Shown here piece by piece: positions 22,764-60,719 of a DNA stretch of 64,000 nt. The stretch's first letter is position 1; each line of letters begins with the position of its first letter. The translations under genes were made by a program, and so were the position numbers. Location of the stretch: the sequence record MZ475897.1; one strand, given 5' to 3'. The notes beneath the pieces were generated by a model. That model searched no databases. It worked only from the letters and a program-made list of their open reading frames with translations, and was not told the origin of the DNA.

Positions 22764-23930
22764 TTATTTTGCAGTGCCCTTGACAGCGGCGACGAATGCA
22801 GCGAACGCTTTATCGAAGTCGTTGAACGTACCCAACTGCTTAGCTTTGCGGTTATCTGGGTGTCCGTGAACAACCTCTTCAATGTGCTCACCGAACTTCA
22901 CGCTTGCCACAGTGAATTTACCTTTGCCCATGATATCCTTGTAGGAGAATTTCATGTCAGCGCTTTCACCGAAAACGATAGCAGTGTTCGGGCCGTCCGG
23001 AGACGAGGTGTAGAAGTAGAAGGAATCGCCTGAACCGTTGTCGCCAATACCGCCGATAGCGCGTGGTGGAATCTTTTTCAGGCCAGAGAACTTAGCGATA
23101 CGCTTACCTGCCAGCACATCATCGCCGTCATCTTCATCAAACAGGTTACCGAACTCAACCATGCTGTGGACGTTTACGTTAGTCGCAGAGGCCACAGGCG
23201 TCTTGCCATGGTTCTTGTTGATTGCTGCCTTGATGCCTTCAAAGTCATTGAATGCGAAGGACTTATCATCAACGCCAGTGTTCAGACTAAGAATCCATTT
23301 GCCTTTGCTTGTGCCGTTGTAGGGGTCGTCAAAGGTCAGGTGAACGCTAAGCTGACCGACATGCCCGTCCATTTCCCACTCTTCACCTGGCTTAGACTTG
23401 AACGACTCACCGCGGTTGTCAATACCGTAAGTCAGTTTTTCGAGACCGAGAATGTGAACCAGTTTATTTGTGAAAGCAACACGCTGTGCGTGCGTCATCT
23501 TACGCAGGCCGGCAGCCGTCACATCACCGATGGCAGATTGGTCAACAGCAGACAACTGCTTAGCGGCACCGCGCTTGGTTGTAGCAGCAACAGCGTTACC
23601 CGCAGCAGGTTTGATTTTGATTGCACGCAGTGCGTTGATGGTAGCCACCAGCGTCTTCGCTTTGTACAGGTTGCGCACAGCGGTCACGAGGGTTTTACCG
23701 GCAGCTTTCTTGGCGAGGCTCTGAGTAGCAGCTTCGTCTTTCAGCAGTTCCAGCAGCGTAGACAACTTAGACGTGTCCAGCTCTTTGATCTTAACCAGCT
23801 CCTCCAGACGCTTGATAATCACGGCAGCGTTCTTCCCAAACAGGATAGCCGCGTTAGCCAGTTGAGGCTTAGTCGCAGATTCAGACTTAACCGTCTGCTC
23901 TTTATCCAGATTCAATTTAATCAGTGACAT
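22764..23930 (-). CDS. Lys/Ala-rich putative internal virion protein with MSLIKLNL...SESA leader
   Basis: 388 aa; N-terminus matches those of 42372..43493 and 43504..44505. Confidence 0.6.
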   Translation of the reverse strand: MSLIKLNLDKEQTVKSESATKPQLANAAILFGKNAAVIIKRLEELVKIKELDTSKLSTLLELLKDEAATQSLAKKAAGKTLVTAVRNLYKAKTLVATINALRAIKIKPAAGNAVAATTKRGAAKQLSAVDQSAIGDVTAAGLRKMTHAQRVAFTNKLVHILGLEKLTYGIDNRGESFKSKPGEEWEMDGHVGQLSVHLTFDDPYNGTSKGKWILSLNTGVDDKSFAFNDFEGIKAAINKNHGKTPVASATNVNVHSMVEFGNLFDEDDGDDVLAGKRIAKFSGLKKIPPRAIGGIGDNGSGDSFYFYTSSPDGPNTAIVFGESADMKFSYKDIMGKGKFTVASVKFGEHIEEVVHGHPDNRKAKQLGTFNDFDKAFAAFVAAVKGTAK

Positions 23931-23939
23931 GTTAAGTCC

Positions 23940-24494
23940 TTACTTGCGGTTTTTAGTCCAGTTAGAATTTTGAGGTTTCTTTTCGCTTTGTGGCGAAGTG
24001 TTCTCCTCGTTAATCTCTTCCTCCTCGTCCTCATCTTCGTCCTCGACGACAGGCTCAGCAGCAGGCGCGGCTTCGATCTTAGTCACTTCGAGAATTTGAG
24101 AGGGCAGTGGATTCTGATTTACAGATGAAGCGACAGCAGCAGGTTCGCTTACTGTAGGCTCTACAGCAGCGGTCGCACCTACAACATGTTCGTGGACGAT
24201 CTGCTTAGTCAGCAACGCGCCTTTCTCAGCGAGAATCTGATCAGCACGTTCTTGGTCCCACTTAACCCACAGGATATCGAGACCCTTGTGTGCGTACATG
24301 AAACCCTGAGGCAGCTTGCCACGACCGTTGAACGGCAGGCCGTTAGAAGGAACGCCTGGCTCGAACTCGTCCATCAGTTCCCACTTACGTTTAGCCGTGA
24401 TACACTTCGGTCCCCACACGCCATCACATGCACCATCGTACAGATCGAGCATGGTCATGATGACTTGGAGCTTCTGATAGAATTTATTCAGCAT
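23940..24494 (-). CDS. Protein with N-terminal peptidoglycan-binding-like (PG_binding_1) domain and acidic tail
   Basis: LQVIMTMLDLYDGACDGVWGPKCITAKRKWE fits the LQ..L...G.Y.G..DG.[FW]G..T..A...[FW]Q pattern; C-terminal EDEDEDEEEE. Confidence 0.55.
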   Translation of the reverse strand: MLNKFYQKLQVIMTMLDLYDGACDGVWGPKCITAKRKWELMDEFEPGVPSNGLPFNGRGKLPQGFMYAHKGLDILWVKWDQERADQILAEKGALLTKQIVHEHVVGATAAVEPTVSEPAAVASSVNQNPLPSQILEVTKIEAAPAAEPVVEDEDEDEEEEINEENTSPQSEKKPQNSNWTKNRK

Positions 24495-24756
24495 CTTTCT
24501 TTTTCTCCGGACGAGGGACGTCTTTGCCGATGATACGTTTGAACAAACGCAGAGCCATAACAGCTTCGGTTTGAGCCATGCGAGATTGCTGCTGGAACTG
24601 CATCGGATTTTCTTTCATCCAATCAACTACACGCTGCAACTCACGCGCAGTAATCAGCTTCTGCGCCAGCTTACCTTGAAGGTACACACGAACACCAGTA
24701 GTCGAAATCTTCGCTGCACTGGTGCTCTCTGCCAAATTGATCACAATCTTAGTCAT
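24484..24756 (-). CDS. Small basic protein with MTKIVINLAESTSA leader
   Basis: 90 aa; AGGA RBS. Confidence 0.65.
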   Translation of the reverse strand: MTKIVINLAESTSAAKISTTGVRVYLQGKLAQKLITARELQRVVDWMKENPMQFQQQSRMAQTEAVMALRLFKRIIGKDVPRPEKKKDAE

Positions 24757-24768
24757 TGTCTTTTCCTT

Positions 24769-24792
24769 AAAAGAAAGGGGCCGAAGCCCCTT
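24769..24792 (-). terminator. Rho-independent terminator with cUUCGg loop
   Basis: AAGGGGC-TTCG-GCCCCTT-TCTTTT after the SNF2 gene. Confidence 0.8.
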
Positions 24793-24795
24793 ATC

Positions 24796-27700
24796 TTACA
24801 CTGACTTGTCTTTCGACGCAGTGAGTTTCAGTTTGGTCAACGCAGCCAGACACTGTTTCATGTTCGGGATGCTGTAGCCAGCTTTCTGAATACGGTTGAT
24901 ACGCGCTTTCGCACCAGCAACGTTCTTCACGAAGCTAATCCACATACCAGATGACAGGCTGAACGTACCGAACTTACGAGTGTTCGGGATTTTCGTTCCC
25001 ACGAAGCGTTTCACTTTCGGGTTAGTCGCTAGGTCGAACATGATACGCAGACGATCTTCCATCACCATCGGATATGCTTTGATGTGCTTAACATCTTTCG
25101 CAGAGGTGTGACGAATCTGGAAGAACTGTTTCAACTGCGACTGTGCCTTAACAGCCAGCTGGTAGTTGAAGCTCAGCTTAGGCGTAGACTCATCGAAGAA
25201 GTCCTGAACGAACTCCAGACGGCGAGAGGACGGACCGTCAAAGTCCAGCTTCTTAGCCTCGATGAAGTCCAAGAACTTCTCAAAGTCAGAGTAGTACGCG
25301 CAATCGATATACACGTAATCCCCGAACTCGGTGAACTCGAAGTCCTTGAGCGCTTTCGCATCTGGGTCGGTCGCATCTGCGTACAGAGCAACGAAGCCGT
25401 TGTACACTGTAGGCGTCAGTTCCAGAGACATATCGGTACCGTCGTCCAGTGTAACAGCAGCGCCACGAACAGCCTTGCGCACTTTGTTGTCCAGCGGAGG
25501 AAGTTCAGCAGCCTTACGACGACGAACACGGGCAGCTGCCTGCTCTACGCCCTCGTTGATTGGCTTACCTTCTTCTTTGTTCGCTTTACGTTGAGTAACG
25601 CGGGCGTTCTTACGCTCTTGAGCCTCAACTTTCTTCTCGGTTGCTTTCGAGTCGGCAGTTTGAGTCTCATCGGTCACGGTGTCTTCGACTTCAACGCGCT
25701 TGGCTTCTGCTTCAACACGCTTACGGTCTTTAGCTGTCGCCCACGGCTTACGCACTTCAAAGAAGCGTTTCAGATCAGCAGGAGATACCTTACCAGCGTA
25801 ATGCACTTTGTTCGCAGGCACAGTAACGATTTCCTCGCCACCAGCAAGACGAACACGCACGGTACTGATAGGGCTGTCAGCACGCAGCTTACCGTCAGCA
25901 GTACGAACCGTAACGCTCACGATGATACCGTTACCGAACTCAGTCACAACAGGTGCACGGTTCAGCGCGTCCTTCACGTTCTCACCTGAGGAGAAGTTCT
26001 GGTTGCGTGCCCAATCGAGCAGACGTTCCAGTCCCCAGTTATGACGGTCTGGGATCTTCTGGTTCGCAACGATAGGTACCTGCTCCATGATACGGAAGTC
26101 ACGCAGAGCCGGAGTGGCAGGCAGCGGCTGCATTGCTGCAATCGTTGTCTTACGCATCTCTTGGAACTCTTGCGCTTCAATATCGTTCAGGTCACGCTTG
26201 GCCAGGAAGTACGGTTTAAAGTCTTCCATCGTGTTGTTATCGATCAACAGACTTGCATTCATCTTGATTGGAGCAAGCTGATACTGGTCGAGTTTTTCGT
26301 AGCGCTGGTTACCTTTCTCGTCGAAACGAGTTTTCTCCAGCGTCTTCCACATCAGACGTGCAACCTTACCTACTTCAAGAGTCTTGTTCGTCATCACCCA
26401 ATCGATGAACACGGCTTCGCGTTTCATATCGCCGGGCTTACCGTTCTCATCAAGCACGGCAGCAGCAACGTCAGGACGGAAGATACGCGCAGTAGACTGA
26501 TCGTATGTACCTGGAGACCACGGGGTGTCACAGCGAATGATACGACTACCCATCTGCATGTTGTGGCCTTCACTGATTGCCTGTTCGTTAGCAATCAGAA
26601 TCTGCACACGGTCATCGGTCTTGAACGCGTCAAGGTTGGCCTCTTTGTTCTGGCCTAACTTACCGACTTCACCGTGATACACAACAGCGACCTTCTTGTA
26701 GTTCTCAGGCAGAGAGTTATAGATTGCGTTTGCAGCACGCGTGTAGCGAGTGAACACAATCAGCTTGCCCTGAACCTCTGGCTTCCAGTAGTCTGGGTCT
26801 TCCGGAGGTGGAACCATTGAAGGCGGCAGTGTTTGACGCTGGAACTCTTCGGACTGCTTACGTGCCAGATACTTCTGACCCTGATAGACAGCCATGTCAA
26901 GTTCACGAGGAGTAACGCCCTGCGTCCAGTTGAAGATTTGCTGCTCTTTGACCATCGGGTCACGTTCAGGCTGCACTTCAAAGTGCTTGCGAATACGCTC
27001 GATGATAGTCAGGACTTTTGCAGAAACGAACTTGGTGACACCAGCGTTTTCAAACGTCAGACGAGCAACGTCATCGCCCATCGGGTCTGTCAGCATCATC
27101 TCCATGCGCTGGAAGTACATGTTGAGGTCGGCGTTACCTGCGAGCAATGCGCCCAGGTCATCACCTTCTTCAATATCATCTTCATCAATGTCGTCAGAGG
27201 CCGTAGTTTCTGCACCGTCCTCTTCGTCATCCTCACCCGCAGATGCAGCACGGCGTTTGGCGTTGTTAGCAGCTTCCTGCAACTTCTCCAACACCTGAGC
27301 ATACATCGCGTTATACACCTCTTGGTGCAGCGATGAGTTAGGCACAGTCGGGTCATCAATCTCAACCTGAATGAAGGTATCGATTGGGTTCGGCAACATG
27401 AACGCCCAGTTCTTACGCTTGAACGAGATGAACGCCGTGTGGTTAGACATACGCGAGTGAGCACGACGAATCATTTCAATGTCATCTTTCGCGCCGTCGT
27501 ATGCAACGTCGAGAGAGTCACCGAACATCGCAGGCGTCATCAGTGCAGCCTGACCAACAATGTCACGCACGCGGTCAGTTACCAGAGTACCAGTAGCGAT
27601 ACGCGCATAGCGAACAGATGGTGCGGTGAATACTGCTTTGGTGTTGAAGTGCACCTGAGAGCCAGACTGGCCGCCAGAGAAGTTCTTAACCTTGTGCGAC

Positions 27701-30630
27701 TCATCCAGCATAACGTAGCTGAAATTGAAGCGGTTAACGAACTCAACAGCACCACGTACGCGAACACGCACACCACCAATGTCAACGTTGAACGTACCGG
27801 TCTGCAAGAAGCTCAAGCCAACGATGAAGAGGGTGTTCTGAGGAGCCTGCTTAATCACGTCGTACATACGGTCTTCACCCCAGGAGTTCACGGTGTCAGA
27901 CGTAATAGGTACGGCGTTCCAACCATCAGCAATCTTGTGCAAGTCATCACACCAGTTCGATACGAGGTTGGTAGGGCAGATGATCAGAGGACGAATGTTC
28001 TCTTCACCTAGATCACTCAGCTCCTGAATGGTAGCAGCAATATCGGACAGACCGATGATTGTCTTACCACCGCCAGGCGCGATAAAGACTGTAGCGTAAC
28101 GCGGACGACGGCGAAGTGTTTTGTGCGCTTCTACCTGATGTGGTAAGAGTGCAGCACCAGCTTTGAGTCCAGGAATACGAATGTCTTCAATCGTGATACC
28201 CTGATCAGGCTTGAGGCGTTCAATCTCAGTTTCCGCAGATTCGAAGATCTCCAGAGACTTAGGAATGACAGCGCTATACATCTTGGAGAACGGCAGAATG
28301 ATTTGCTGCAAACGTTCTGCGCCTGGCGCTTCGTCGCTTTCAACCAGAGAGCTAAACAGCTTCTTACGATCAGCATTGCCGATAGCAGCAGCCAGCTCAC
28401 GATACAGCGCACCACCGAAGTAGTTGTTCAGTCGCGCCATGTCGCTGATTTTAGCAGTCTGACCCATCACAAAGTAATGCGTGTGATTAGGCAGAGACTC
28501 CATAGCACCAGCAATATCACCGCTCATCTCAGTAACGGTAGTCGCTACCATGTTCGAGCCGCGTAGGCCAGATGCATCGTTGAGCACGCGCAGCATGATA
28601 CGCATAGCAATCAGACCAGAATCACCCTGAGCCAGAGTAAAGTCATTCTCAATCAGACCCGCGTACAGGTTGTTGTCGAGAGAGCTTTCGGTCAGTGACG
28701 CGTTCTCTGCATCCATACCGATTGCAGCACGCGCTTGCTTGATCAGCGTAGGCAGATCAGGCACCAGCTTGTGGTTGAATGCGAAAGAATACGCAGCCAC
28801 AGTCTGTGCGATGATGCTAACAAGGCCATCAACTTCCGAGTCTTCGGTGGTCGTGAACACGATGGTCTTGTCGTTGACGCTATCGATCAGTTTGCCTTTC
28901 GCAGCTTCCAGTTTAGCCGCCTGCAACAGCAGGTCATTAGCAACACGATACGAGGTCATGTTACCGCTAGACTGATTGCTCATGATGTTGCGAATAACGT
29001 TCGACGCTGAGCGGAAGTTAGGCGTTTCGCCAGGCTCTGCAAAGTCGTAACCCAGCATATCAGCAACGTCTAACGAGTTAGGCGCTTTCATACCGACAGT
29101 ACGGGTTTCGTTAACCGACAGGCCACCACCGTTCGAGGTGTTAACCACCAGCGCGAAGTCTGGGTCGACGCCGATACACACGTTGCTGAATCGCGTTAAC
29201 GATTTGGCTTCTGCCTGCATCGAGTTATCGAAGTCGAGGTTGCCGTTCTGAATAGCGAAGATGTTGGTGCGCAGCGTCTGGTGTTCAGTAGACAGCGGTA
29301 CGCCTTTCGCAAACAGATGCTCCAGCACGCGGTTCAGTTCGGTTTCGTAGTTGCGCACCATCTCAACGTCAATGTCTTCACGTCGAGGCAACACAGACAG
29401 CGTACCGTTAGGCATGATAGTCAGATCGTTTTCATCTGCAACAACATCATGGACAGCGTAGCCGAACTTCTCACGCAGTTGTTTAAGCGCAGGCAGGCCA
29501 GTAGCAGAGGTAACGTAGCGTGGGATACGCGCAGCACGCGTGATACCAGTACGAGTAGAACCACTGATACGGAAGTAATAGCTCGTCCAGCCCTGGAACC
29601 AACGATACAGACACATGGTCTGAGTGTCAGCACCCTGAGAGATGTACTCAACCATCTCTTTGCTCAGGTTAACAATCAGGCCGCCTTCTGCACGAATGTC
29701 GGTAGCAATTGCTACTTCGTTGAACTCCAGCGGATAGTCGTGGCTGATCTTCATCGCTTCGAGTTTGCGATCAATCATCTGCTTGCCTGGGATAGAGCGC
29801 AGGCCCAGAGTCATGAAGTCGCCGAGCGCATCAACAACGTCTTTGTCCAGATTACGGAACAGGTTGATATCCAGATTGTGCATCTTCGGGTGCACACCAC
29901 GCAGCGCCGCGTTGTAGATAGACCAGTCTTTGCCGAGAGGGATACGAACAACTTTGGTCTGGAACACGTTGGCGTTGGTACGCGCTTCACCGAAGATATC
30001 CTTGTACAGGGTCTTCGCGGCGTTGATAGCTGCCTGAGCAATGTCAGAGCTATACACCTGAATGTTCATCTGCTCAAAGTTAGAGTCGTTATCGACACGA
30101 GGACGATCACTACCCTGACTGTTCGTAACGTTGAAGTTACCCGCACCAGCAGCTGGAGACTGCGGGCATGGCGTGCCTGACATGATAATGTCTTTGCCGC
30201 CTGGGTACACGGTACTGTTTTCGATGATAGCGCCTGAGGTGTTGCTCAAGTTTTCCGCTAACGCCGTTTTGATTTCACGAGACAGCTTACCGCTATTCAG
30301 CAGCACCTGAATCTTGTTCGTGGACATGTCCACATATTGCTGCACACGCTTGGTGAACTCTTCTGGCGCTACTTCCAGAATGTCTTCGAACTCAGCACCA
30401 TTACGGATGATGTAGTTGAGCAAGTCGAATGCTGCATAGATACGGGCGACAGTTGACGCAGAGAACACGGCCAGTGTTTCATAGTGACGGCGTGCTTTGC
30501 CTGTCACGTACATCTTGGCCATGAGCTGCTCGGAGCCGAACGGTACAGGTTTTACCGCCAGCGCCTGATTAAAGCTATCAGCAATTTGCTGGGTCGCTGT
30601 GGCGGAGGTACTGATAATCTGATTCATCAT
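24796..30630 (-). CDS. Very large SNF2/SWI2-like helicase-domain protein
   Basis: 1944 aa; Walker A APGGGKT, LIICP, MLDESHKVKN, ATGT; C-terminal lobe ILIANEQAISEGHNMQ...DTPWSPGTYDQSTARIFR; about 830 N-terminal residues unassigned. Confidence 0.85.
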   Translation of the reverse strand: MMNQIISTSATATQQIADSFNQALAVKPVPFGSEQLMAKMYVTGKARRHYETLAVFSASTVARIYAAFDLLNYIIRNGAEFEDILEVAPEEFTKRVQQYVDMSTNKIQVLLNSGKLSREIKTALAENLSNTSGAIIENSTVYPGGKDIIMSGTPCPQSPAAGAGNFNVTNSQGSDRPRVDNDSNFEQMNIQVYSSDIAQAAINAAKTLYKDIFGEARTNANVFQTKVVRIPLGKDWSIYNAALRGVHPKMHNLDINLFRNLDKDVVDALGDFMTLGLRSIPGKQMIDRKLEAMKISHDYPLEFNEVAIATDIRAEGGLIVNLSKEMVEYISQGADTQTMCLYRWFQGWTSYYFRISGSTRTGITRAARIPRYVTSATGLPALKQLREKFGYAVHDVVADENDLTIMPNGTLSVLPRREDIDVEMVRNYETELNRVLEHLFAKGVPLSTEHQTLRTNIFAIQNGNLDFDNSMQAEAKSLTRFSNVCIGVDPDFALVVNTSNGGGLSVNETRTVGMKAPNSLDVADMLGYDFAEPGETPNFRSASNVIRNIMSNQSSGNMTSYRVANDLLLQAAKLEAAKGKLIDSVNDKTIVFTTTEDSEVDGLVSIIAQTVAAYSFAFNHKLVPDLPTLIKQARAAIGMDAENASLTESSLDNNLYAGLIENDFTLAQGDSGLIAMRIMLRVLNDASGLRGSNMVATTVTEMSGDIAGAMESLPNHTHYFVMGQTAKISDMARLNNYFGGALYRELAAAIGNADRKKLFSSLVESDEAPGAERLQQIILPFSKMYSAVIPKSLEIFESAETEIERLKPDQGITIEDIRIPGLKAGAALLPHQVEAHKTLRRRPRYATVFIAPGGGKTIIGLSDIAATIQELSDLGEENIRPLIICPTNLVSNWCDDLHKIADGWNAVPITSDTVNSWGEDRMYDVIKQAPQNTLFIVGLSFLQTGTFNVDIGGVRVRVRGAVEFVNRFNFSYVMLDESHKVKNFSGGQSGSQVHFNTKAVFTAPSVRYARIATGTLVTDRVRDIVGQAALMTPAMFGDSLDVAYDGAKDDIEMIRRAHSRMSNHTAFISFKRKNWAFMLPNPIDTFIQVEIDDPTVPNSSLHQEVYNAMYAQVLEKLQEAANNAKRRAASAGEDDEEDGAETTASDDIDEDDIEEGDDLGALLAGNADLNMYFQRMEMMLTDPMGDDVARLTFENAGVTKFVSAKVLTIIERIRKHFEVQPERDPMVKEQQIFNWTQGVTPRELDMAVYQGQKYLARKQSEEFQRQTLPPSMVPPPEDPDYWKPEVQGKLIVFTRYTRAANAIYNSLPENYKKVAVVYHGEVGKLGQNKEANLDAFKTDDRVQILIANEQAISEGHNMQMGSRIIRCDTPWSPGTYDQSTARIFRPDVAAAVLDENGKPGDMKREAVFIDWVMTNKTLEVGKVARLMWKTLEKTRFDEKGNQRYEKLDQYQLAPIKMNASLLIDNNTMEDFKPYFLAKRDLNDIEAQEFQEMRKTTIAAMQPLPATPALRDFRIMEQVPIVANQKIPDRHNWGLERLLDWARNQNFSSGENVKDALNRAPVVTEFGNGIIVSVTVRTADGKLRADSPISTVRVRLAGGEEIVTVPANKVHYAGKVSPADLKRFFEVRKPWATAKDRKRVEAEAKRVEVEDTVTDETQTADSKATEKKVEAQERKNARVTQRKANKEEGKPINEGVEQAAARVRRRKAAELPPLDNKVRKAVRGAAVTLDDGTDMSLELTPTVYNGFVALYADATDPDAKALKDFEFTEFGDYVYIDCAYYSDFEKFLDFIEAKKLDFDGPSSRRLEFVQDFFDESTPKLSFNYQLAVKAQSQLKQFFQIRHTSAKDVKHIKAYPMVMEDRLRIMFDLATNPKVKRFVGTKIPNTRKFGTFSLSSGMWISFVKNVAGAKARINRIQKAGYSIPNMKQCLAALTKLKLTASKDKSV

Positions 30631-34023: not shown

Positions 34024-34031
34024 GAAATTAG
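34024..34031 (-). promoter_or_regulatory. Motif B CTAATTTC
   Basis: 31 nt upstream of the 33993 start. Confidence 0.45.
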
Positions 34032-34042
34032 TATTTCGAGGG

Positions 34043-36314: not shown

Positions 36315-37603
36315 TACTTGACCGACTGTTTAAGCAGACGCTTCTGTTGAGGACTCAGACCCATAACGTCGGAGATTTGATCAATCTTCGCCAGAGTCAG
36401 AACGCCTTTAGCAGTGCCGCTAGAACCAGTCAGGCTGATCTTAACGAACTCACGTCCTTCACGACCTGTGACCAGCTGGTGGATAAGAGTGTTCTTACCG
36501 CTACGTCCCGCACGCAATGCGCTGCTTGCCATGCCCAAAATCTCGGTAACAGCTTCGCGCTTCTCAGAAGGAGACAGGCCAGGAACGAGACGCACATAAA
36601 GGCTATCGTTCTGCACACGCACGGAGTCGAAGATTTCTTTCTTGCGACCACGAACTGTATGCTGGCGTTGACCCAACTGAGTCATGTTACGCAGGTCATC
36701 AGTCGAACGATTGATAGGCTTACGTTCGCTGTAGTTCAGGAATCCATCCAGAGCCATCAGCTGGTTGATAGCACGCTTCATTTCAGGAGCGGTTTCAATC
36801 AGACGGCCCAGCGGGAATGAGTTAGGAACTTTCTCATCCACCAGCGAGGTGATGTAGTTTTCACTCAGACCAGTAGCCACTGCGATCTTGGTAGAGACTA
36901 CGATAGCATAGGTCGGATAGTGCAGGCCATCAGAGTTCACGAAGTTATCGATAAACACATAGGTCTGGAAGATGATTGGGTCAGTACCCTGCGCGATGAA
37001 AGTACGTGTACGAATCTTAGAGTAATCTTCTTTACTCAGAATCTTCGACAGGTAGTTAGCGATGGTAGCAGCCAACTTGGTGTGTTCTTTCGGTGCGCCG
37101 TTCTTAACGTCAATGCTCATCAAACGCACCAGCTGGGTCTGCTGGTCTTTGGCCTGATTGATAACACTAAGCAGTGACTTGGAAGCGCCTGTCTGATCTT
37201 TGAAGGCGCTGAACGTTTTGCTATTCAGAATCTGATAAGCAACGGACAACTCGCCGATAGCCTGAGACAACTGACTGACCTGAGCGTTATATTTAGCTTT
37301 GTTCTGGACGTCAGAAATATCAATCTTCGACAAGTCGATCACTTGGTTCAGATCGATTGACTTGGCCTGTTTACCTTTGATTGAGCCTTCCAGATCAGAA
37401 AGTTCAATCGCTTTAGGGCTGGCGCTAACAGACAGCAGCTTCTTAGGAATGGTTACAGAAGTAGCAAGAGAGATAACGTTTTCAAGTACCTTCTTGAACT
37501 CTTTAGCAGTACGTGCATTACGCAACGCCACCATGTTCCCAGAGCCGTAATCAACGGATGCGCTGATGCTGCTAACTTCATTGTTTTTGGCAGTCTTAGC
37601 CAT
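36314..37603 (-). CDS. Hypothetical, probably virion protein with SSISA leader
   Basis: Start reassigned to ATG 37603 (MAKTAKNNEVSSISASVD) with GAGG RBS. Confidence 0.6.
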   Translation of the reverse strand: MAKTAKNNEVSSISASVDYGSGNMVALRNARTAKEFKKVLENVISLATSVTIPKKLLSVSASPKAIELSDLEGSIKGKQAKSIDLNQVIDLSKIDISDVQNKAKYNAQVSQLSQAIGELSVAYQILNSKTFSAFKDQTGASKSLLSVINQAKDQQTQLVRLMSIDVKNGAPKEHTKLAATIANYLSKILSKEDYSKIRTRTFIAQGTDPIIFQTYVFIDNFVNSDGLHYPTYAIVVSTKIAVATGLSENYITSLVDEKVPNSFPLGRLIETAPEMKRAINQLMALDGFLNYSERKPINRSTDDLRNMTQLGQRQHTVRGRKKEIFDSVRVQNDSLYVRLVPGLSPSEKREAVTEILGMASSALRAGRSGKNTLIHQLVTGREGREFVKISLTGSSGTAKGVLTLAKIDQISDVMGLSPQQKRLLKQSVK

Positions 37604-37640
37604 GATTATCCTCGGCTGGGGCAATTGTTCGAATCGAGTA

Positions 37641-37648
37641 AAAATTAG
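37641..37648 (-). promoter_or_regulatory. Motif B CTAATTTT
   Basis: 38 nt upstream of the 37603 start. Confidence 0.45.
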
Positions 37649-37716
37649 CGACAAGGAGCTGTTTATTTCTGATCTTAGCGCAGGAAGACTTTACAAATTT
37701 TTTGACTGAGAATGAC

Positions 37717-39657: not shown

Positions 39658-39666
39658 TATTTACAG
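39658..39666 (-). promoter_or_regulatory. Motif A CTGTAAATA
   Basis: Exact motif 27 nt upstream of sbcD, directly after a terminator hairpin. Confidence 0.7.
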
Positions 39667-42371: not shown

Positions 42372-43493
42372 TTAATGCCAAGAATTTTGAGCAGCCATGC
42401 GGTCTACTTTCTTAAACTTCTGCAATTTCTTGATCGATGTTTCAAGAGCTTTGCGGGCGCTTGCGTAAGGTGCACCTGGATTAGAGCCACCGCCATTGCC
42501 ACCGAAGTTAGCATAACTATTCCATTTGCCTGTCTTACTATCCTTGCTCATACGGTAGCTTGCTGTGCCGAGTTTGTACTCAATGCTGTTCGCTTTAACC
42601 ACGAACTTACCTTTCGACACGCCACCTTTCTCGATCAAGTTCTTAACGATGTTCTTGACTTCTTTCGAAGCTGGCCAGTGGTCATGAGCTTGGATAGTTA
42701 CCTTGGTACCCGGTACTTTCTTAGTGCTATAACTGTCGAGAACAGTTTTACCAAGCATTGGCTTATCTTTAGACGGATCGCCAGCCATTGCGTCATCTAA
42801 AGAACTGGCTTTGGGCTTACCCAGAAGTTTTTCTGCACGATCAGCTTTGATTGCACGTTTCTTCTCTGGTGAATAAGCACCGCCGCCTACAAGATCTTTA
42901 CGCTTCTTAGTAGAGGCTTTCGCAACAGGAGCTTTCTTCGCTGCTTTGGTCACAGTCTTACTACCCAGCGCATCGAACTTAGCAGAAGCCAGGAACTTAG
43001 GCTTGAACTGACCGCGCTTGCCAGTAACGCCGAACTCGTTCAGCTTGGCAGTACGCAATGCAGCTAATACCTTAGGAGCTTTTTCAGTAATGCCCTGAAG
43101 AGAAGTTGAGGTCAGTCCCATCTTCAAGCCAGACAGTCCGTGCTTACGCGCATAAGACGCAGACTCTTTCAGATGCAGCTTGGCTTCTTTGAGTGCGGCG
43201 CTGCCTTTAGCTTTATAGTCAGCAGCTTTGGCAGAAGCGCGAGATTTTGCATCACCGGTCAGCGTTTTGACTTTAGCGCGGGCCTTGCTCCACGCATCGA
43301 TGTTACGCGCAGCACTAACGCCAGCAGTCTTAGCTTTCTTCAAATGACCGAGGATGGTCGTCAGTTCTGCTTTCTTCTCTGAGTTAATAACCAGAGTAGC
43401 AACGCCATTCACCTTAGCGATTTTGTAGCTAGGCTTTTTAGCAGCAGACTCAGACACAACGTGATCTGCAAGATTGATTTTAATGAGTGACAT
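42372..43493 (-). CDS. Highly basic Lys/Ala-rich putative internal virion protein with MSLIKINL...SESA leader
   Basis: 373 aa; N-terminal ~150 aa clearly paralogous to 43504..44505. Confidence 0.65.
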   Translation of the reverse strand: MSLIKINLADHVVSESAAKKPSYKIAKVNGVATLVINSEKKAELTTILGHLKKAKTAGVSAARNIDAWSKARAKVKTLTGDAKSRASAKAADYKAKGSAALKEAKLHLKESASYARKHGLSGLKMGLTSTSLQGITEKAPKVLAALRTAKLNEFGVTGKRGQFKPKFLASAKFDALGSKTVTKAAKKAPVAKASTKKRKDLVGGGAYSPEKKRAIKADRAEKLLGKPKASSLDDAMAGDPSKDKPMLGKTVLDSYSTKKVPGTKVTIQAHDHWPASKEVKNIVKNLIEKGGVSKGKFVVKANSIEYKLGTASYRMSKDSKTGKWNSYANFGGNGGGSNPGAPYASARKALETSIKKLQKFKKVDRMAAQNSWH

Positions 43494-43503: not shown

Positions 43504-44505
43504 TTATGCGTTGTATTGAGTCAATGGCCGTGGCTTACGCTTCGGCAAACGTTTTGTTTTTATACCAGCAGCTTTATCTGAGGCGCGTTTATCTTCGCGT
43601 GCAGAGATGCCAACTGTTTGTGACAGGTAGCTGGTCAATGAAGCCTTAGACAAGGTTTCTTTGCGCTTGCCTGAGTCAACAACATATGAATTGCCCGAAG
43701 CGTGCGTGATCTTGAGCTTGAGCTTACCATTATCATAATGGATGTTGCCGTCAGCATCACCGTACAGTTTGGCAGACGCAGCTTTTTCCTGATACTTCTC
43801 CAGCTTGTCGATAATGCTACGCAGAGCGCTACTGCTTTTGTAGATATTGTTCAGATGTTTCTTACCTTCGTCCACTTTAGGCGCGGCAGCTTTCTTCGTC
43901 ACAGGCTTTGTAACTAAACGCTTGGTAGTTTTCACAGCAGGTGCTTTACCCGAAGCTGCGATCTTCTCACCAATCTTATCGAACTTATCACCAGTAGCAT
44001 ATCGAGGCTTCAAAGGTACTGTGTGATGTGCACCGTATTTTGCACGGAAACTATCAGGCTTCGCTTTACTGATCTTGCCTAACGTATAGGTCGGGTCAGT
44101 TTGTGTGATATACGACGCTTTGATGGACAGGTCGAGCGCACTCAAGCCAGCTTTTTTCAAAAGATCAGCAGCAGCTTTAGCAAGTGCTTTGGCTTCTGTT
44201 ACACCGTGCTTGATAGCTGCTTTGTTATCACTAATCTTTTCACGAATAGGCGCTTTCTTTGCAGGGGTCTGAGCCTGACTTAGCTTGAGTTTCAATTTCT
44301 CAGTAGCAACACCAAGCTTTGCCGCAGACACACCGAGAGTTTTGGCCTTCTTGAGATTAGCAACGGCCTTCGTAACAGCGGACTTGTGTTTGCTGTCAAT
44401 TACGAGGGCCTGTGCACCGCCGATAGGAACGAGATGATAAGCTGGCTTGGCTTTGGCGGATTCAGATACTGCGAACTCTGCCAAATTGATTTTAATAAGT
44501 GACAT
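43504..44505 (-). CDS. Highly basic Lys/Ala-rich putative internal virion protein with MSLIKINL...SESA leader
   Basis: 333 aa; paralogue of 42372..43493. Confidence 0.65.
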   Translation of the reverse strand: MSLIKINLAEFAVSESAKAKPAYHLVPIGGAQALVIDSKHKSAVTKAVANLKKAKTLGVSAAKLGVATEKLKLKLSQAQTPAKKAPIREKISDNKAAIKHGVTEAKALAKAAADLLKKAGLSALDLSIKASYITQTDPTYTLGKISKAKPDSFRAKYGAHHTVPLKPRYATGDKFDKIGEKIAASGKAPAVKTTKRLVTKPVTKKAAAPKVDEGKKHLNNIYKSSSALRSIIDKLEKYQEKAASAKLYGDADGNIHYDNGKLKLKITHASGNSYVVDSGKRKETLSKASLTSYLSQTVGISAREDKRASDKAAGIKTKRLPKRKPRPLTQYNA

Positions 44506-44514: not shown

Positions 44515-45111
44515 TTAGACTCGGCCGGCCATAGTAAATTCTTTGCCCGCAGAGTAATCTCCTAAGGCAGCGTAAAGAGAATCGCGCAACATCTTCTGAA
44601 TGATATCCGAGTTATACGCGGACGCGTCGCGGAAAGCGACTTCAACAGTTTCAGTGCGTGGGTTGATTACAGCATAACGTAGAGGAGCAATCTCCTGAGC
44701 GTCACACCACAGATCGACAACGTGCTGTAGTCCAGGCGTCATCTGAATTTTGAAATCAGACAGCAGGAACACAGCACTTTGAATTGGCGGCGGAGCAGAC
44801 TGAGAGACAACAGCATTGTCTCCAAGTTTCTCCATAGCCATAGACGCATTGTACACTGAGGAGAATTTCGTTTTCAGTGCAGAGGTCTGTACTACCTTAT
44901 AGCTATTCGATGAAATGCCCTGACGGCGCAGCTTGGCGATACGCACAACGTAATCACCAGAATCGTCTGAGGCAAATGCAACGTAAGCGTAGCTCACGAA
45001 GCCAGGCTCCTCACTAAGCAGCTTGTGGTCGAGGGCACGAACACCCAAGACAGCACTAAGTGCCTGTAGGCCCATCTGAACTTCGCGGGACAGAGACACG
45101 TACATTTCCAT
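44515..45111 (-). CDS. Hypothetical protein with MEMYVSLSR leader
   Basis: Start reassigned to ATG 45111, just downstream of the endolysin stop; about 198 aa. Confidence 0.6.
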   Translation of the reverse strand: MEMYVSLSREVQMGLQALSAVLGVRALDHKLLSEEPGFVSYAYVAFASDDSGDYVVRIAKLRRQGISSNSYKVVQTSALKTKFSSVYNASMAMEKLGDNAVVSQSAPPPIQSAVFLLSDFKIQMTPGLQHVVDLWCDAQEIAPLRYAVINPRTETVEVAFRDASAYNSDIIQKMLRDSLYAALGDYSAGKEFTMAGRV

Positions 45112-49875: not shown

Positions 49876-49884
49876 TATTTACAG
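49876..49884 (-). promoter_or_regulatory. Motif A CTGTAAATA
   Basis: Exact motif 38 nt upstream of 49838, heading the sbcC operon, after a terminator. Confidence 0.7.
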
Positions 49885-49940: not shown

Positions 49941-50387
49941 TTAATATCTACGAGGCTTCTTAGGCTTCTTGATCGTAGACTTAGGACGCTTGATAGCCCG
50001 CAGTGCTTTGCGTGCTTCCACAATTTGTTTGGCTACAGTGGAACGACGAGCTTTGACCTGGTCTGTATCTTGGTCAGTGCCTTTCAGCTTATCGAGTCTG
50101 TTCCATTCTTGCACCAGACGATCAACAACACCAGCACGACCTACGCGTTGCTGGTTGATGCGCACAATGTCCTGATGAGTCTTCACGGAGTTTTGTGCGT
50201 CTTTCTGTTTAGCACGCGCAGATGCAACGTGGTCAGAGTTACCCTCAGCAGACTTCTCGTTAAGCTGCTTACGTCTAAGTGCCAGACGGCGTTGCGCTTG
50301 CTTGAGTTCGTCTTTGGAGTTCTCCAGTTGCGTCTGCATGTCTTCAAGAGGACTTGAGCGTGCGCTCAGACTAACGAGAAGTTCCAT
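49941..50387 (-). CDS. Basic coiled-coil protein with MELLVSLSA leader
   Basis: Start reassigned to ATG 50387 with GAGG RBS; 148 aa. Confidence 0.65.
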   Translation of the reverse strand: MELLVSLSARSSPLEDMQTQLENSKDELKQAQRRLALRRKQLNEKSAEGNSDHVASARAKQKDAQNSVKTHQDIVRINQQRVGRAGVVDRLVQEWNRLDKLKGTDQDTDQVKARRSTVAKQIVEARKALRAIKRPKSTIKKPKKPRRY

Positions 50388-50394: not shown

Positions 50395-50946
50395 TCACAC
50401 AGGCTGTATGGTAATGATCTGGACGCCTTGTTCATTACGCGACTTGAGAATGCGGAAGCGGAAGTCTATTGGATAAATCCATTCGAGTTCATCCATAAGA
50501 CCATCAAGAATCATCTCACGTTCTTCTTCGTCACCACCGAATTCTTTATCAAGATCAGCAGCCATGATAAGATTGTACGTGCGTTGCCAATAGTTGAAGG
50601 CTTTGTTCTTTGGCCCAGGAAGAATCTCCAGCATCGTATCTGTCTTGCCTGCCTTTGCAAAACCTTTAGCAGTAGCTAAGTCTTGACTGAACGACAGGTA
50701 CTTGTTGATCATCACGAAAGGATTCTTAGCCTGCTTAAACAGAGCCATGAGTTCTTTTTCGTACAGACCACGATACAGAGGCATCTCAGGACGTTCGGGA
50801 TATTTAGCGATCAGATCATCAAGCGCAGGGCTGGAGCGATTAGCGTCAATCACATGCCCTTTATCGTGGAGCATCGTCCACATAATGTCTTGCTGTCTGT
50901 CTGTGTAGGCAGGTATCTTAGCACTGAGGCTAACCATAAGTTCCAT
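50395..50946 (-). CDS. ADP-ribosyltransferase of the R-S-E class (Alt/Mod/VIP2-like fold) with MELMVSLSA leader
   Basis: 183 aa; PLYRG, YLSFS and ELEWI motifs in canonical order. Confidence 0.75.
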   Translation of the reverse strand: MELMVSLSAKIPAYTDRQQDIMWTMLHDKGHVIDANRSSPALDDLIAKYPERPEMPLYRGLYEKELMALFKQAKNPFVMINKYLSFSQDLATAKGFAKAGKTDTMLEILPGPKNKAFNYWQRTYNLIMAADLDKEFGGDEEEREMILDGLMDELEWIYPIDFRFRILKSRNEQGVQIITIQPV

Positions 50947-50959
50947 GCATGTTCCTTAA

Positions 50960-50985
50960 AAGAAAAGGCGGACCGAAGCCCGCCT
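50960..50985 (-). terminator. Rho-independent terminator with cUUCGg loop
   Basis: AGGCGGGC-TTCG-GTCCGCCT-TTTCTTTT. Confidence 0.8.
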
Positions 50986-51074
50986 CTGAGTAATGTGCGC
51001 TATGCACTCGACGGTTAAGTCTCCTGCTATTGTTTTACCTCGTTGCAGTAAACGAGGAGATAAGGATCACCTCC

Positions 51075-51623
51075 TCAGACGGTACCTAATACTTCAAGCA
51101 CATCTTCGTCGTCCACACTTGCAGACCACGAACGCATAACAGAAGCATTGCCGCGATTGCCTGTCAGCATTGATTTAACTGCTGGTGTGGCTTCGATTTC
51201 GGCATAGTGTTCCAAGAGAGCTTTGTCATCTTTGAACCACATAATGGAGTTACCGTCCTTAGGGACGATCAAGAATTGGGTAGGCTTCTGGGTGACGTTT
51301 AACGTCAGGTAGTAATCACCAGCACCTTTAGGAGTCAGCATCGGCATTGGCTTCATCGCATACATGAAGTCCTTAGCGTGCATGAGTTTCTGATCGCCGA
51401 GCAACCAGATTGCGCCTTCTTCGCCTTGACGCACAGCAGACAAATCGCCTTTACGTGTTGCAATCGTTCCGAATACATCTTTATCGAAACGTGACAGACC
51501 GAAGATCAGCGAGGCGAGACGCTTCAGGTCCGGGGTCGTGCATGGACTGTTGATCACAGCCATACCCTCAGACCCAAGTGTGAATTTAGAGAGTGAAATA
51601 AAGAGTTCCATCGTAACGTCCAT
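51075..51623 (-). CDS. Hypothetical protein with MELFISLSK leader (start 51623 or 51611)
   Basis: 178-182 aa; motif B upstream. Confidence 0.65.
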   Translation of the reverse strand: MDVTMELFISLSKFTLGSEGMAVINSPCTTPDLKRLASLIFGLSRFDKDVFGTIATRKGDLSAVRQGEEGAIWLLGDQKLMHAKDFMYAMKPMPMLTPKGAGDYYLTLNVTQKPTQFLIVPKDGNSIMWFKDDKALLEHYAEIEATPAVKSMLTGNRGNASVMRSWSASVDDEDVLEVLGTV

Positions 51624-51644: not shown

Positions 51645-51652
51645 AAAATTAG
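51645..51652 (-). promoter_or_regulatory. Motif B CTAATTTT
   Basis: 22-34 nt upstream of the start, after a terminator. Confidence 0.5.
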
Positions 51653-51676
51653 TGTTCCTTAAGACATTTCTGAAAT

Positions 51677-53038: not shown

Positions 53039-53047
53039 TATTTACAG
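53039..53047 (-). promoter_or_regulatory. Motif A CTGTAAATA
   Basis: Exact motif 37 nt upstream of dnaX, after a terminator. Confidence 0.7.
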
Positions 53048-53353: not shown

Positions 53354-53401
53354 AACATCTCCTGAATATTAAACCTCAACGTTCTTGAATTATGTTTACA
53401 G

Positions 53402-53806: not shown

Positions 53807-53814
53807 AAAATTAG
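53807..53814 (-). promoter_or_regulatory. Motif B CTAATTTT pointing into the structured non-coding region
   Basis: Recurring motif; no credible CDS follows. Confidence 0.35.
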
Positions 53815-53841
53815 TGACATTCCCTTTTATTCAGAAAATTC

Positions 53842-54754: not shown

Positions 54755-55345
54755 CTATGCCCTCAGGTCAACCAATATAGATCCGCTTAGGTCACGCAGC
54801 ATCTCTCGACCAAGAGGCGTGTACATGATTTGATGCACAGCAATACGTTCGAGGAACTGCTTGCTGGAATGTACATCGTGTCCTGTACGCTTTCGAACAA
54901 ACTCTATGATCGAGGGAGCAGGTTGAATGAGGAACGTCAGTATCTCCGCATCGTGGAGAACACTACCCATGTCAGTGATTGGCTTTAGCTCAGTCTCCTG
55001 ATCAAGGATATATCGGATAACGCGTTCCTCGTTACCAGTTTTAGGATTATGCTTAAAGAAGGCGCGAGCAGATTCAACCATAAGTTTGAAATCATACTCG
55101 TCATCCGCAGTAGGCATTCTGAGAAAGAGAGCAGCAAGCAACAAATTTATTTCCACCTGTGGACCACGTTCAATGTTGAGCATCGCGTGTGCGGTGAGCA
55201 CTACATCAAGCGCATAGTCACGGGTATACAGAGGATGAGAGGCTACTGTTCTGTCAAAATAGTCAAGGGCTGTGCGAAGTCCATGACGAGATAACAGGTG
55301 CTCTGCCTTAACACGAGCTAGGCGTTGCACCCTAGTCTTCTCCAC
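54755..55345 (-). CDS. HD-domain-like protein, apparently degenerate
   Basis: Helical layout HPLY..DYALDV / LLLAALFL / VIRYI..Q / VLHDAEIL mirrors HD proteins, but the HD dyad is not evident. Confidence 0.4.
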   Translation of the reverse strand: MEKTRVQRLARVKAEHLLSRHGLRTALDYFDRTVASHPLYTRDYALDVVLTAHAMLNIERGPQVEINLLLAALFLRMPTADDEYDFKLMVESARAFFKHNPKTGNEERVIRYILDQETELKPITDMGSVLHDAEILTFLIQPAPSIIEFVRKRTGHDVHSSKQFLERIAVHQIMYTPLGREMLRDLSGSILVDLRA

Positions 55346-56306
55346 CGATCTCTTTGAGGCTGTTCTTGATTGCTTTGCGCAGCGTCTTGCCTACGTCAAT
55401 GCCATCAACATGTTTTGCGAACACATGCGCAAACAGCGTCGTCGGATTTTTCATGATTGCTTTATCGAGGTCAGGACGACCCTCAGCGATTTGCATTTCG
55501 CCAGGCCACAGTTCAGCAACTGCCGAGCTATCGTTAACGGCGATAAGCTCAAGCTCGCGGACTGAGATAGAGTTCTGGCGTGCAATCGTTCGGAAGATGA
55601 GATCAACGAAAGGCAGGAGATCTTCTGACACAACGTTCTTGACGTCTTTGGCATCGCCAGCACGCTGGAAGTCTTCCATGAGATCTGTCAGGACTTTCTT
55701 GTCGATCTTATGCACGTTGCGCAGTTTGTTGAACAACACCATCCAGCGAACTTTACGCTTGGAACTAATCAGGTGCGTCCACACACTTTCGCCGAGAGCG
55801 ATCAGCAAACGATTATACACGTCAACTGAAACTGACTCACGGCTAACGAACACGGTCAGCTCATCATGCCACTCGTCTTTCTTAAACTTAGAACGGAACG
55901 AGTGTGTCTTGGAGCCTGACTGCTGGACAAAGTTGATGCGCTTGCAGCGGCGCAGTGCTTCATGCAGCTTGTACTTCTCGATCACTTTCGGGAGTCGCTT
56001 CACTCCCTTACGACACGCTTTGGCGCAATCGGTTTCACGACCGTAGAGCGCGAGAGAAGGAAGGCCAGACATTACAGCGAGGCTCGCGTAAGGTCGGACA
56101 GTAACTCCACAAACAGACATGCCGGGTTCCGGGTCTTTGCCCAGTACGGCAAGAACATCGCCTGCTTTAGGACTGAACTTAATTGATTCTGGGTCAGGAG
56201 TACCGAGTGTTGCAGCCAGAAGGCCGACGGTCTTGCCTGTCGCCAGAACCAAATGATTTTTGTTGCCTTGCCTAACGACAAGGTAATCTTGCTCACTATG
56301 TTTCAT
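55332..56306 (-). CDS. Hypothetical protein
   Basis: 324 aa; in the operon. Confidence 0.7.
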   Translation of the reverse strand: MKHSEQDYLVVRQGNKNHLVLATGKTVGLLAATLGTPDPESIKFSPKAGDVLAVLGKDPEPGMSVCGVTVRPYASLAVMSGLPSLALYGRETDCAKACRKGVKRLPKVIEKYKLHEALRRCKRINFVQQSGSKTHSFRSKFKKDEWHDELTVFVSRESVSVDVYNRLLIALGESVWTHLISSKRKVRWMVLFNKLRNVHKIDKKVLTDLMEDFQRAGDAKDVKNVVSEDLLPFVDLIFRTIARQNSISVRELELIAVNDSSAVAELWPGEMQIAEGRPDLDKAIMKNPTTLFAHVFAKHVDGIDVGKTLRKAIKNSLKEIGGED

Positions 56307-59715: not shown

Positions 59716-59749
59716 CTTGGAACCTCAAAAAGCTCGTTCTCTTGGCTGA

Positions 59750-59758
59750 TCTTTACAG
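59750..59758 (-). promoter_or_regulatory. Motif A variant CTGTAAAGA
   Basis: 35 nt upstream of the PolA-like gene start. Confidence 0.5.
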
Positions 59759-59759
59759 A

Positions 59760-60059
59760 ATCCTGCTTGTTCTACGGTCAGAGACTCAAATTGCATCATC
59801 GGATTAGATATGTCTATCTATCTCGGTACAGCTTCGGCATCTTATGCAGCATGAGCGCACTATATTCACAGAAAATAAGCGCCTCGCTCCGAAATCCCTA
59901 GCGCCTAGACGCACAACCCGAGCGAAGAACCATGCCTACGGTATCGAAAACGCGAATACCGCTTTAGCATGGTTATTTGGTGTCAATACGACGATCTTAT
60001 GATCTAAGCGCACTTTGAGACTATTCTTATTGCCGTAGGTCGATTCTGTAGGAAAGTGG
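59760..60059. other. Non-coding, hairpin-rich intergenic region
   Basis: About 300 nt with no ORF in the track; stems TAGATA/TATCTA (59805-20), TCGCTC/GAGCGA (59884-925), AACCATGC/GCATGGTT with inner CGGTAT/ATACCG (59928-74). Confidence 0.45.
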
Positions 60060-60719
60060 TTATTTTTTGCGCGAAATTTGCTGATTCAGCTTTTTGCCGA
60101 TCTGCGTCAAAACGCGCTCAACGGTCTCTCCGTCACGCTCTCCGATAGCCATAGCGAGCCTTTCGCCCTGTTCACGCGATAGCTCAGGCATAATCAGCTT
60201 GAGCATCTTTGATCGCGCCTTTGCAGACTTTGATTTGCCTTTTGATAGCGATTGCGTTTCCATTTCGGCAGCAACACGGCTCATTGTGCGCTGCACGCGA
60301 CGATCTGCGAATATATCACCGAAGATATTGCCAAACAGGTCCTGGAACGAGCGTCCGCCACCAAATATCTCATCCTTTGTGAAGCGCACTTCCTTTCCTA
60401 GCGCATTACGCTTAACGCTGTGCGTGCTTTCTACTTCGTTTTGGACGCGTGCACCTTCGATGAAGTTCTCATCAGGCCGCGATTTCTTACCTTCAGCACC
60501 AGGCTTAGTGACGCCGTTACGCAGCTCAGCACGCCCCTCAACAGCCGCATCCGGGTCAAACATGTCATCAGTGTTGACGCTCTGATTAGGGTCAAAGGGG
60601 ATTTTGTCTGTCAGCTTGTTTTCATCAGGCCACGAACGAGGAATATCAGACGCCGGTTGAGGGCTATTCGTCATATCGCCGTTCTTTTCGCTGTTCAGAC
60701 TCACATAAATCTTGGTCAT
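60060..60719 (-). CDS. Hypothetical, probably virion protein (MTKIYVSLNS N-terminus)
   Basis: 219 aa; AGGA RBS; co-transcribed with the neck-like gene. Confidence 0.6.
   Translation of the reverse strand: MTKIYVSLNSEKNGDMTNSPQPASDIPRSWPDENKLTDKIPFDPNQSVNTDDMFDPDAAVEGRAELRNGVTKPGAEGKKSRPDENFIEGARVQNEVESTHSVKRNALGKEVRFTKDEIFGGGRSFQDLFGNIFGDIFADRRVQRTMSRVAAEMETQSLSKGKSKSAKARSKMLKLIMPELSREQGERLAMAIGERDGETVERVLTQIGKKLNQQISRKK

Follow-up and report, generated by a model that had tools for sequence, protein, structure and literature searches.

The window analysed here is a 64,000-nucleotide stretch of Erwinia phage pEa_SNUABM_21 (positions 124001-188000 of MZ475897, 100% identical), in which a series of minus-strand genes encode proteins that begin with a short leader ending in S-x-S-[A/K/R]. 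pEa_SNUABM_21 is a 265-kb jumbo myovirus of the genus Snuvirus; its replication and late-sigma gene set is T4-like, and it falls in the 'Lupandier' group together with PaBG, Lu11, AD1, JA11, Yoloswag and Alexandra (PMC7412058). For the window and the rest of the genome we used the RefSeq annotation (NC_061451) of the 99.5% identical phage pEa_SNUABM_7 (SNU7), in which the head module lies outside the window (major head protein gp147, head maturation protease gp151, portal gp006); Dickeya phage JA11, whose protease is 68% identical and whose genes came from an independent caller, served as the second genome for enrichment. In the N-termini given below, a hyphen separates the leader from the site and ^ marks the predicted cut.

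Tagged genes in the window

A first-pass annotation of the window had placed the leader on about ten proteins and quoted 11 N-termini. All 11 are found at their minus-strand starts, and 10 of them carry S-x-S-[A/K/R] at residues 6-19, preceded by a hydrophobic residue; the eleventh, encoded by 60060..60719 (minus strand), begins MTKIYVSLNS without an S-x-S, its JA11 orthologue starts differently, with MQTEIIFGSADP, and it is probably not a member. The RefSeq starts match those of the first-pass annotation for 9 of the 10 tagged genes, the exception being the gene starting at 45111.

All ten tagged genes lie on the minus strand. The 388-amino-acid (aa) product of gene 22764-23930 has a long leader of the 'IKINL' type, and leader and site (23874..23930) read MSLIKLNLDKEQTVK-SES^A; its JA11 orthologue, gp162, begins MTTISLNVD-SVS^A. 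Gene 24484-24756 encodes a 90-aa protein with MTKIVINLAE-STS^A (24715..24756), and gene 24796-30630 encodes a 1944-aa SNF2 helicase-like protein with MMNQII-STS^A (30601..30630), the JA11 counterpart of which starts MQIF-STS^A. The 429-aa product of gene 36314-37603 begins MAKTAKNNEVS-SIS^A (37559..37603), where the JA11 orthologue reads ...NEAQ-LS^ASVDY. This open reading frame mechanically reaches a TTG at 37654 (36314-37654, minus strand); annotation and orthologue agree on the ATG at 37603, which has AGGA upstream, as the start. Genes 42372-43493 and 43504-44505 encode proteins of 373 and 333 aa that begin MSLIKINLADHVV-SES^A (43443..43493) and MSLIKINLAEFAV-SES^A (44455..44505), respectively.

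The remaining leaders are of the ME..SLS style. Gene 44515-45111 encodes a 198-aa protein with MEMYV-SLS^R (45085..45111). The RefSeq start of its SNU7 homologue, gp200, is at 45171, 60 nucleotides (nt) upstream of the ATG at 45111 and overlapping the endolysin gene; because both the JA11 orthologue, gp179, which starts MEILV-SIS^A, and the tag itself fit 45111, we take 45111 to be the true start, so that at least one RefSeq start codon is corrected. Gene 49941-50387 encodes a 148-aa protein with MELLV-SLS^A (50361..50387; JA11 orthologue MQVLI-SLS^K), gene 50395-50946 a 183-aa ADP-ribosyltransferase (ART) with MELMV-SLS^A (50920..50946), and gene 51075-51611 a 178-aa protein with MELFI-SLS^K (51585..51611; JA11 orthologue MQIVF-SLS^K).

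All-against-all BLAST showed that the proteins starting at 23930, 43493 and 44505 are paralogues, that the one starting at 24756 matches the 43493 family over its first ~16 residues only, and that the four MEx(x)[VI]SLS proteins are alike at residues 1-8(21) only. The tagged bodies differ: they include the SNF2 helicase-like protein, the ART and several separate PHROG families. The earlier view that the bodies are mostly unrelated holds for these and needs amending for 23930, which joins 43493 and 44505 as a paralogue; likewise, of the two leader sub-styles that had been distinguished, the 'IKINL' style is partly due to paralogy, and the ME..SLS proteins share nothing beyond their N-terminal residues. 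Both the Ser codons (AGT/AGC/TCA/TCT) and the Leu codons (CTT/CTC/CTG) vary among the leader copies, which places the conservation of the leader at the protein level.

GC-rich hairpins (GGGGCTTCGGCCCC, GGCGGGCTTCGGTCCGCC, then TTTCTTTTAAGGAA) lie on the minus strand at 24757-24795 and 50947-50990, directly upstream of two tagged genes; they are terminator-like and are placed straight before a strong ribosome-binding site.

Enrichment, membership and conservation

Of the 346 proteins of the genome, 15 have an S.SA that begins in their first 20 residues, where the remainder of the proteome predicts 3.9 (Poisson p=1.4e-5), and [VILFM]S.SA occurs there in 10 against 1.0 expected (p=1e-7), counts that are inflated by partial paralogy (23930/43493/44505 with gp254; gp141 and gp157, which share a KMPT-N domain). 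After paralogues are discounted, at least 12 unrelated bodies genome-wide share h-S-x-S (h, hydrophobic) within residues 4-19. An unsupervised scan of all 3-residue patterns ranked V-S-L first (14 vs. 2.6), S.SA fourth and S-L-x-A eighth, and reversed-sequence controls gave 0-2 matches vs. 9-12. S.SA is also over-represented at the N-termini of JA11 (15 vs. 3.5 expected, p=4.8e-6); the scan of N-termini that the first-pass annotation had suggested as a check is thus positive in the full genome and in this relative.

The tagged set comprises ~19 proteins genome-wide. Members outside the window are gp083, the Nudix hydrolase gp127, the KMPT-N domain proteins gp141 and gp157 of the head region, the NAD-dependent DNA ligase gp156, the acidic proteins gp233 (S-L-S-Q) and gp243 (S-L-S-H), gp253 and gp254; the N-terminal tag occurs in no annotated tail, sheath, baseplate or fibre protein of the genome. 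The statement that no replication enzyme carries the leader is correct inside the window and fails genome-wide, where the NAD-dependent DNA ligase and the Nudix hydrolase are tagged. The best-supported reading of the recognised unit is hydrophobic-S-x-S, with A/K/R as a variable P1' residue at which H, Q, T, F and S also occur.

Pfam finds KMPT-N in three head-region proteins of NC_061451 (gp141, gp150 and gp157): in gp141 and gp157 the domain follows immediately on the tag, and the C-terminal ~250 residues of gp157 are a poly-Asp/Glu tract; gp150 combines the domain with a HELAH zinc-peptidase motif and is untagged. NAD-linked enzymes also recur among the tagged proteins, namely the ART (50395-50946), the NAD-dependent DNA ligase gp156 and possibly the Nudix hydrolase gp127, and may represent a co-delivered NAD-related function.

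The motif is better conserved than its surroundings: across 13 orthologue pairs from SNU7 and JA11, both Ser and the residue after them agree at 31 of 39 positions (79%), compared with 85 of 211 neighbouring N-terminal positions (40%; Fisher p=7e-6), and the x position drifts freely (SESA/SVSA, SESA/SQSA, SLSR/SISA). Yoloswag retains the sites too. Eight homologues of the window ART all have M1 and S6-L7-S8-A9, differ at positions 2-5 and 10-13, and show an indel right after A9.

The leader is modular, as judged from orthologues that lack it and from the different bodies that stand behind it. The Yoloswag DNA ligase, which starts MAVQLSLKRL, aligns with SNU7 MKVRLSISA|SVSLKQL right after the predicted cut; the leader is missing from the Yoloswag and PaBG ligases and from the PaBG Nudix hydrolase, the starts of which correspond to the predicted SNU7 cut points, and the JA11 Nudix hydrolase keeps the N-terminal extension and has lost S-x-S. 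Conversely, JA11 gp176, gp177, gp180 and gp190 carry perfect tags on bodies without a SNU7 homologue, and gp190 (MELLI-SLS^K) occupies the slot of the window ART but belongs to another ART family (Pfam ART-PolyVal).

Head proteins, relatives and transcription units

The same site is present in head proteins encoded outside the window. Residues 31-37 of the major capsid protein (MCP) read L-S-x-S-T-G-E, without change in SNU7, JA11, Yoloswag and PaBG, and the MCPs of the Erwinia/Dickeya phages have more S-x-S sites near residues 65-75; as the second SNU7 site (H-S-Q-S-N at ~65) is not positionally conserved in PaBG, sequence does not fix the final MCP cut. The portal has F-L-S-Q-S-A-G at residue 51, which co-varies by lineage (JA11 S-T-S-S; PaBG A-T-A). 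The protease begins with a variable leader followed by h-S-x-S-F; S7, S9 and F10 do not vary among four genera, and the motif can still be recognised in metagenomic homologues down to ~40% identity.

Identification of the prohead protease had also been suggested as a check, and it is found as the orthologue of SNU7 gp151, outside the window, with a predicted model that matches the gp21/HK97 fold. Because the gp151-type protease has neither a Pfam family match nor a PDB sequence match, T4 gp21 included, its structure was predicted. The AlphaFold model (36 homologues) has a mean predicted local distance difference test (pLDDT) score of 85; the site falls in its disordered residues 1-18. Against the PDB the sole meaningful match is T4 gp21 (5jbl; probability 0.80, template modelling (TM) score 0.49, E=0.06), and against BFVD dozens of annotated prohead serine proteases (COG3740) match at probability 1.0; by this model the protease has the prohead serine protease fold of T4 gp21/HK97, which is herpesvirus-assemblin-like. 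Three residues, the invariant H124 and S181 and the almost invariant H208, are by analogy catalytic candidates. Predicted S-x-S substrate peptides for the gp151-type protease are MELMVSLSAKIPAY.

Two relatives provide experimental anchors. Phage G shares with this phage the MCP family (PDB 6wkk) and the protease family (gp19), and N-terminal sequencing showed that its MCP is shortened from 282 to 255 residues (PMC5646251 Table 1). These lengths place the cut after G-R-V-A-L-A (residues 22-27), before Q28, at a hydrophobic-small-x-small^ site of the same shape as V-S-L-S^A. The virion proteins of PaBG are processed and the mass of its MCP falls by ~20% (PMC7412058 section 3.2); a cut at E-A-V-A^A, residue 78/79, would take off 21%. 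The PaBG gel proteome contains gp202, a 221-kDa helicase-like protein that forms the Coomassie-visible virion band 1, and gp83 (PMC7412058 Table 1). PaBG gp202 is the syntenic orthologue (E=0) of the window SNF2 protein and starts MGSLFTLN-SLS^A, with S-L-S-A at residues 9-12; gp83 begins MLIKINLLEAVAAK (MLIKINL), an 'IKINL'-style leader that closes with EAVAA, the pentapeptide also found at the MCP site. PaBG leaders mostly end in A-x-A rather than S-x-S, and other examples, in gp217, gp219 and LigT, end A-E-A^A/K. From these comparisons there appears to be a clade-wide rule, h-[S/A]-x-[S/A]^, that the Erwinia/Dickeya phages have fixed on Ser; from lineage to lineage, several unrelated proteins change their sites in concert, as co-evolution with one protease predicts.

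Two promoter-like motifs recur between genes. The motif [GA]CTAATTT, a candidate late promoter, lies 31-55 nt before the start codon (74 nt for gp192); the structural genes behind it are those for sheath and PAAR, the gene before the portal and the head-tail connector unit. In the window it occurs on the minus strand at 51646-51653, 38503-38510, 37642-37649, 34025-34032 and 53808-53815; the copy at 37642-37649 (GCTAATTT) stands before gene 36314-37603 and that at 51646-51653 (ACTAATTT) before gene 51075-51611. Tagged genes lie directly behind 5 of 14 such late-like motifs, and the earlier observation that several leader genes sit in putative late units is borne out in the window, where units headed by 34025-34032, 37642-37649 and 51646-51653 contain 7 of the 10. 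The second motif, CTGTAAA[CT]A, is a candidate early/middle promoter that precedes replication genes, in the window those for Pol I, the clamp loader and SbcD and outside it those for sigma and SSB; its minus-strand sites include 22702-22710, 39658-39666, 41032-41040, 49876-49884, 53039-53047 and 53393-53401, among others.

Two untagged minus-strand genes lie near the tagged ones. Gene 37777-38436, behind a late-like motif, encodes a Lys/Ala-rich basic protein that is histone-H1-like (AAKKPAAKK repeats) and possibly a DNA-condensing head protein; the similarly basic and syntenic PaBG gp191 is a processed virion protein (PMC7412058). Gene 41960-42325, between the tagged cluster and the gene for a GTP-binding-domain protein, encodes a small protein annotated in JA11 with a DUF2778 domain (L,D-transpeptidase-like effector family).

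A proposed capsid-targeting propeptide and its known counterparts

We propose that the shared N-termini are propeptides of 5-18 residues that carry at their end the site recognised by the prohead serine protease which the phage itself encodes: the site would be hydrophobic-Ser-x-Ser, the Erwinia/Dickeya-phage version of a clade-wide 'hydrophobic-small-x-small^' specificity, and would most likely be cut after the second Ser (S-x-S^A). The leader would mark unrelated proteins for entry into the assembling prohead core, as the T4 capsid-targeting sequence does, and the protease would trim them along with the MCP propeptide, the portal and itself. The cargo would comprise the ART, the 1944-aa SNF2 ATPase, small DNA-associated or acidic proteins, the NAD ligase and the Nudix hydrolase, which, once trimmed, would stay in the DNA-filled head and probably be delivered to the next host cell. 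We put the probability that the S-x-S leader is such a T4-like capsid-targeting and maturation propeptide, with small-x-small specificity, at roughly 0.65; that it combines a maturation site with cargo selection is likely.

The first-pass annotation had suggested a Ser-based address or cleavage site, and that idea gains from the same site in the MCP, portal and protease, from the gp21/HK97 fold of the protease, from the tagged PaBG orthologue of the SNF2 protein found in virions, from the phage G MCP cut after h-A-x-A, and from the late-type position of most tagged genes; the A/K/R that it had included is not part of the core. We infer that the scissile bond follows the second Ser because the phage G site is cut in this manner and because the next residue varies (A, K, R, H, Q, T, F, S). 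Packaging of the tagged proteins in this phage, their retention in the head (supported through PaBG) and their injection with the DNA are, by analogy, what we would expect.

Several points weigh against this proposal. The cut position in phage G was worked out from the two published lengths, no sequence being printed there; the PaBG gel proteome makes no head/tail distinction and reports no N-termini (PMC7412058); and in the literature we found neither proteomic nor N-terminal data for Snuvirus, Alexandravirus or Salmondvirus, nor cleavage or N-terminal data for Snuvirus, AD1/JA11 or in the phage G multi-omics. N-terminal enrichment in PaBG, with genes from an automated caller and 4 loci, is not significant. 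The PDB match of the protease to gp21 is modest (TM 0.49, E=0.06), and the structure model of the ART (pLDDT 53), too uncertain to tell if the leader stands outside the fold, was left out of the fold search. CTGTAAA[CT]A stands directly before one tagged gene only, the ligase, and the same motif appears to head the unit that contains the genes starting at 45111, 44505 and 43493. Ligase, Nudix hydrolase and SNF2 protein are, moreover, unusual capsid cargo.

Other explanations for the shared N-termini were weighed against the same evidence. S-x-S could be the site of the prohead protease and the tagged proteins of core or scaffold type, degraded or expelled instead of retained as cargo or effectors; gp157, gp233 and gp243 are highly acidic or disordered, gp141 and gp157 have the head-module KMPT-N domain, and leaders of 2-5 residues hold little address information, all of which would suit this account. 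We nevertheless regard it as unlikely, for mature PaBG virions still contain the SNF2 orthologue in Coomassie-visible amount (PMC7412058), and ART, SNF2, ligase and Nudix proteins with intact catalytic domains would make poor scaffolds. The tag might instead be read by some other factor, such as the peptidase encoded by 55332-56306, the KMPT-N metallopeptidase gp150 or a host A-x-A-like peptidase, for cytoplasmic processing, localisation or timed turnover. Small-x-small does resemble the -3/-1 rule of signal peptidase, and the phage has two more peptidases, the one in the window being conserved in PaBG; yet the leaders are without a charged n-region or a hydrophobic h-region, the MCP, portal and prohead protease carry the site too, and phage G MCP matures at a site of the same shape, so we consider this account quite improbable. 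The window peptidase (55332-56306, minus strand; 324 aa, phrog_17197, no Pfam match; PaBG gp182 annotated as a Zn-metalloprotease) is a possible alternative processing enzyme.

There is very little room left for the view that the tags are merely inherited N-terminal domains, or a nucleotide-level element of translation initiation or promoter type, with no protein signal. Paralogy does link 23930, 43493, 44505 and gp254, and gp141 and gp157 have a common domain; but at least 12 unrelated bodies of known, different folds carry the tag, the codons for Ser and Leu are not the same among copies, sites occur internally at residues 32 (MCP) and 51 (portal), and orthologues exist both with and without the leader. 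Pure paralogy was rejected for most members on account of the unrelated bodies, and a nucleotide-level repeat or promoter running into the reading frames on account of the varying codons; this explanation is largely refuted.

If the capsid-targeting propeptide is real, a simple sequence rule would find capsid-internal, probably co-injected proteins across a jumbo-phage clade and would give a first role to ~19 mostly 'hypothetical' genes of this phage. Prohead proteases of the gp21/HK97 fold would have evolved a Ser/Ala-directed specificity beside that for Glu in T4 and phiKZ; an NAD ligase, a Nudix hydrolase, two ART families and a giant SNF2 ATPase would, as the comparison suggests, have become cargo by gaining a leader of 5-15 residues; and the tag would be a very short handle for loading proteins into phage heads. 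A further idea, which we offer tentatively and regard as possible but doubtful, is that 5-9 residues, with Met followed by 2-4 residues, a hydrophobic one and S-x-S, form a minimal tag that is at once address and cut site, the cargo docking in the substrate groove of the core protease, which would act as receptor, with 'hydrophobic-small-x-small^' extending across a large and little-studied clade of proteases from the PaBG/Lu11 group, phiRSL1, phage G and cluster C mycobacteriophages. Were this so, the injected proteome could be read from sequence, and that of Snuvirus would comprise an NAD-linked set of enzymes, namely the ART, NAD ligase and Nudix hydrolase, together with a DarB-like SNF2 ATPase that enters with the DNA. 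MSLIKINLAEFA may resemble the N-terminal extension of Firmicute ribosomal protein L27 and phage 80alpha that Prp cuts, a likeness set aside as an explanation.

The proposed arrangement is closest to that of T4, where a short N-terminal capsid-targeting sequence on IPI-III and Alt is removed by the prohead protease gp21 (PMC3012670, PMC9026906). In both, a short conserved N-terminal peptide stands on proteins that are unrelated and exchange rapidly, an ADP-ribosyltransferase among them; the leader stays constant as the bodies behind it are swapped; and the capsid protein and the protease have the site as well, the protease being, by our model, of the same fold. Unlike in T4, where the site is L/I-x-E with Glu at P1, it is hydrophobic-S-x-S here, no Glu is conserved and leaders are as short as 2-5 residues; large enzymes (1944-aa SNF2, NAD ligase, Nudix hydrolase) are the predicted cargo, and packaging is a prediction here.

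Head maturation in phiKZ and SPN3US depends on the proteases gp175 and gp245, with the motif S/A/G-x-E (PMC10052503, PMC5694885), and SPN3US also processes ejection proteins (PMC10052503). These are likewise jumbo phages; many head proteins are cut there, and here MCP, portal and protease are predicted to lose N-terminal propeptides; a small P3 residue is common to both, and V/A at P4 has been noted for SPN3US. In contrast to their Glu, the predicted P1 residue is Ser in the Erwinia/Dickeya phages and Ala or Ser in PaBG and phage G, the propeptides here are much shorter and the lineage ('Lupandier' group) is unrelated; unlike in the phiKZ/SPN3US lineage, no virion RNA polymerase genes are annotated in the SNU7 RefSeq record.

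DarB of P1, a ~250-kDa helicase-type virion protein, is directed by its N-terminus, which needs more than 9 and fewer than 30 residues (PMC9024508), and the PaBG orthologue of the window SNF2 protein is similarly a virion protein of 221 kDa; the Dar proteins, however, have neither a consensus leader nor a reported shared cleavage motif, whereas here one motif is found on ~19 proteins. The leaders also differ from Sec signal peptides (signal peptidase I, A-x-A), being 5-16 residues long and having at most 3-5 hydrophobic residues and often an acidic residue at position 2; a basic n-region and a hydrophobic h-region of 10-15 residues were looked for in the leaders and not found. We found no description of an S-x-S leader motif in the searchable literature, and the Aravind jumbo-phage survey does not mention one. 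The leader and its maturation site are likely a variant of the T4 arrangement with a different specificity.

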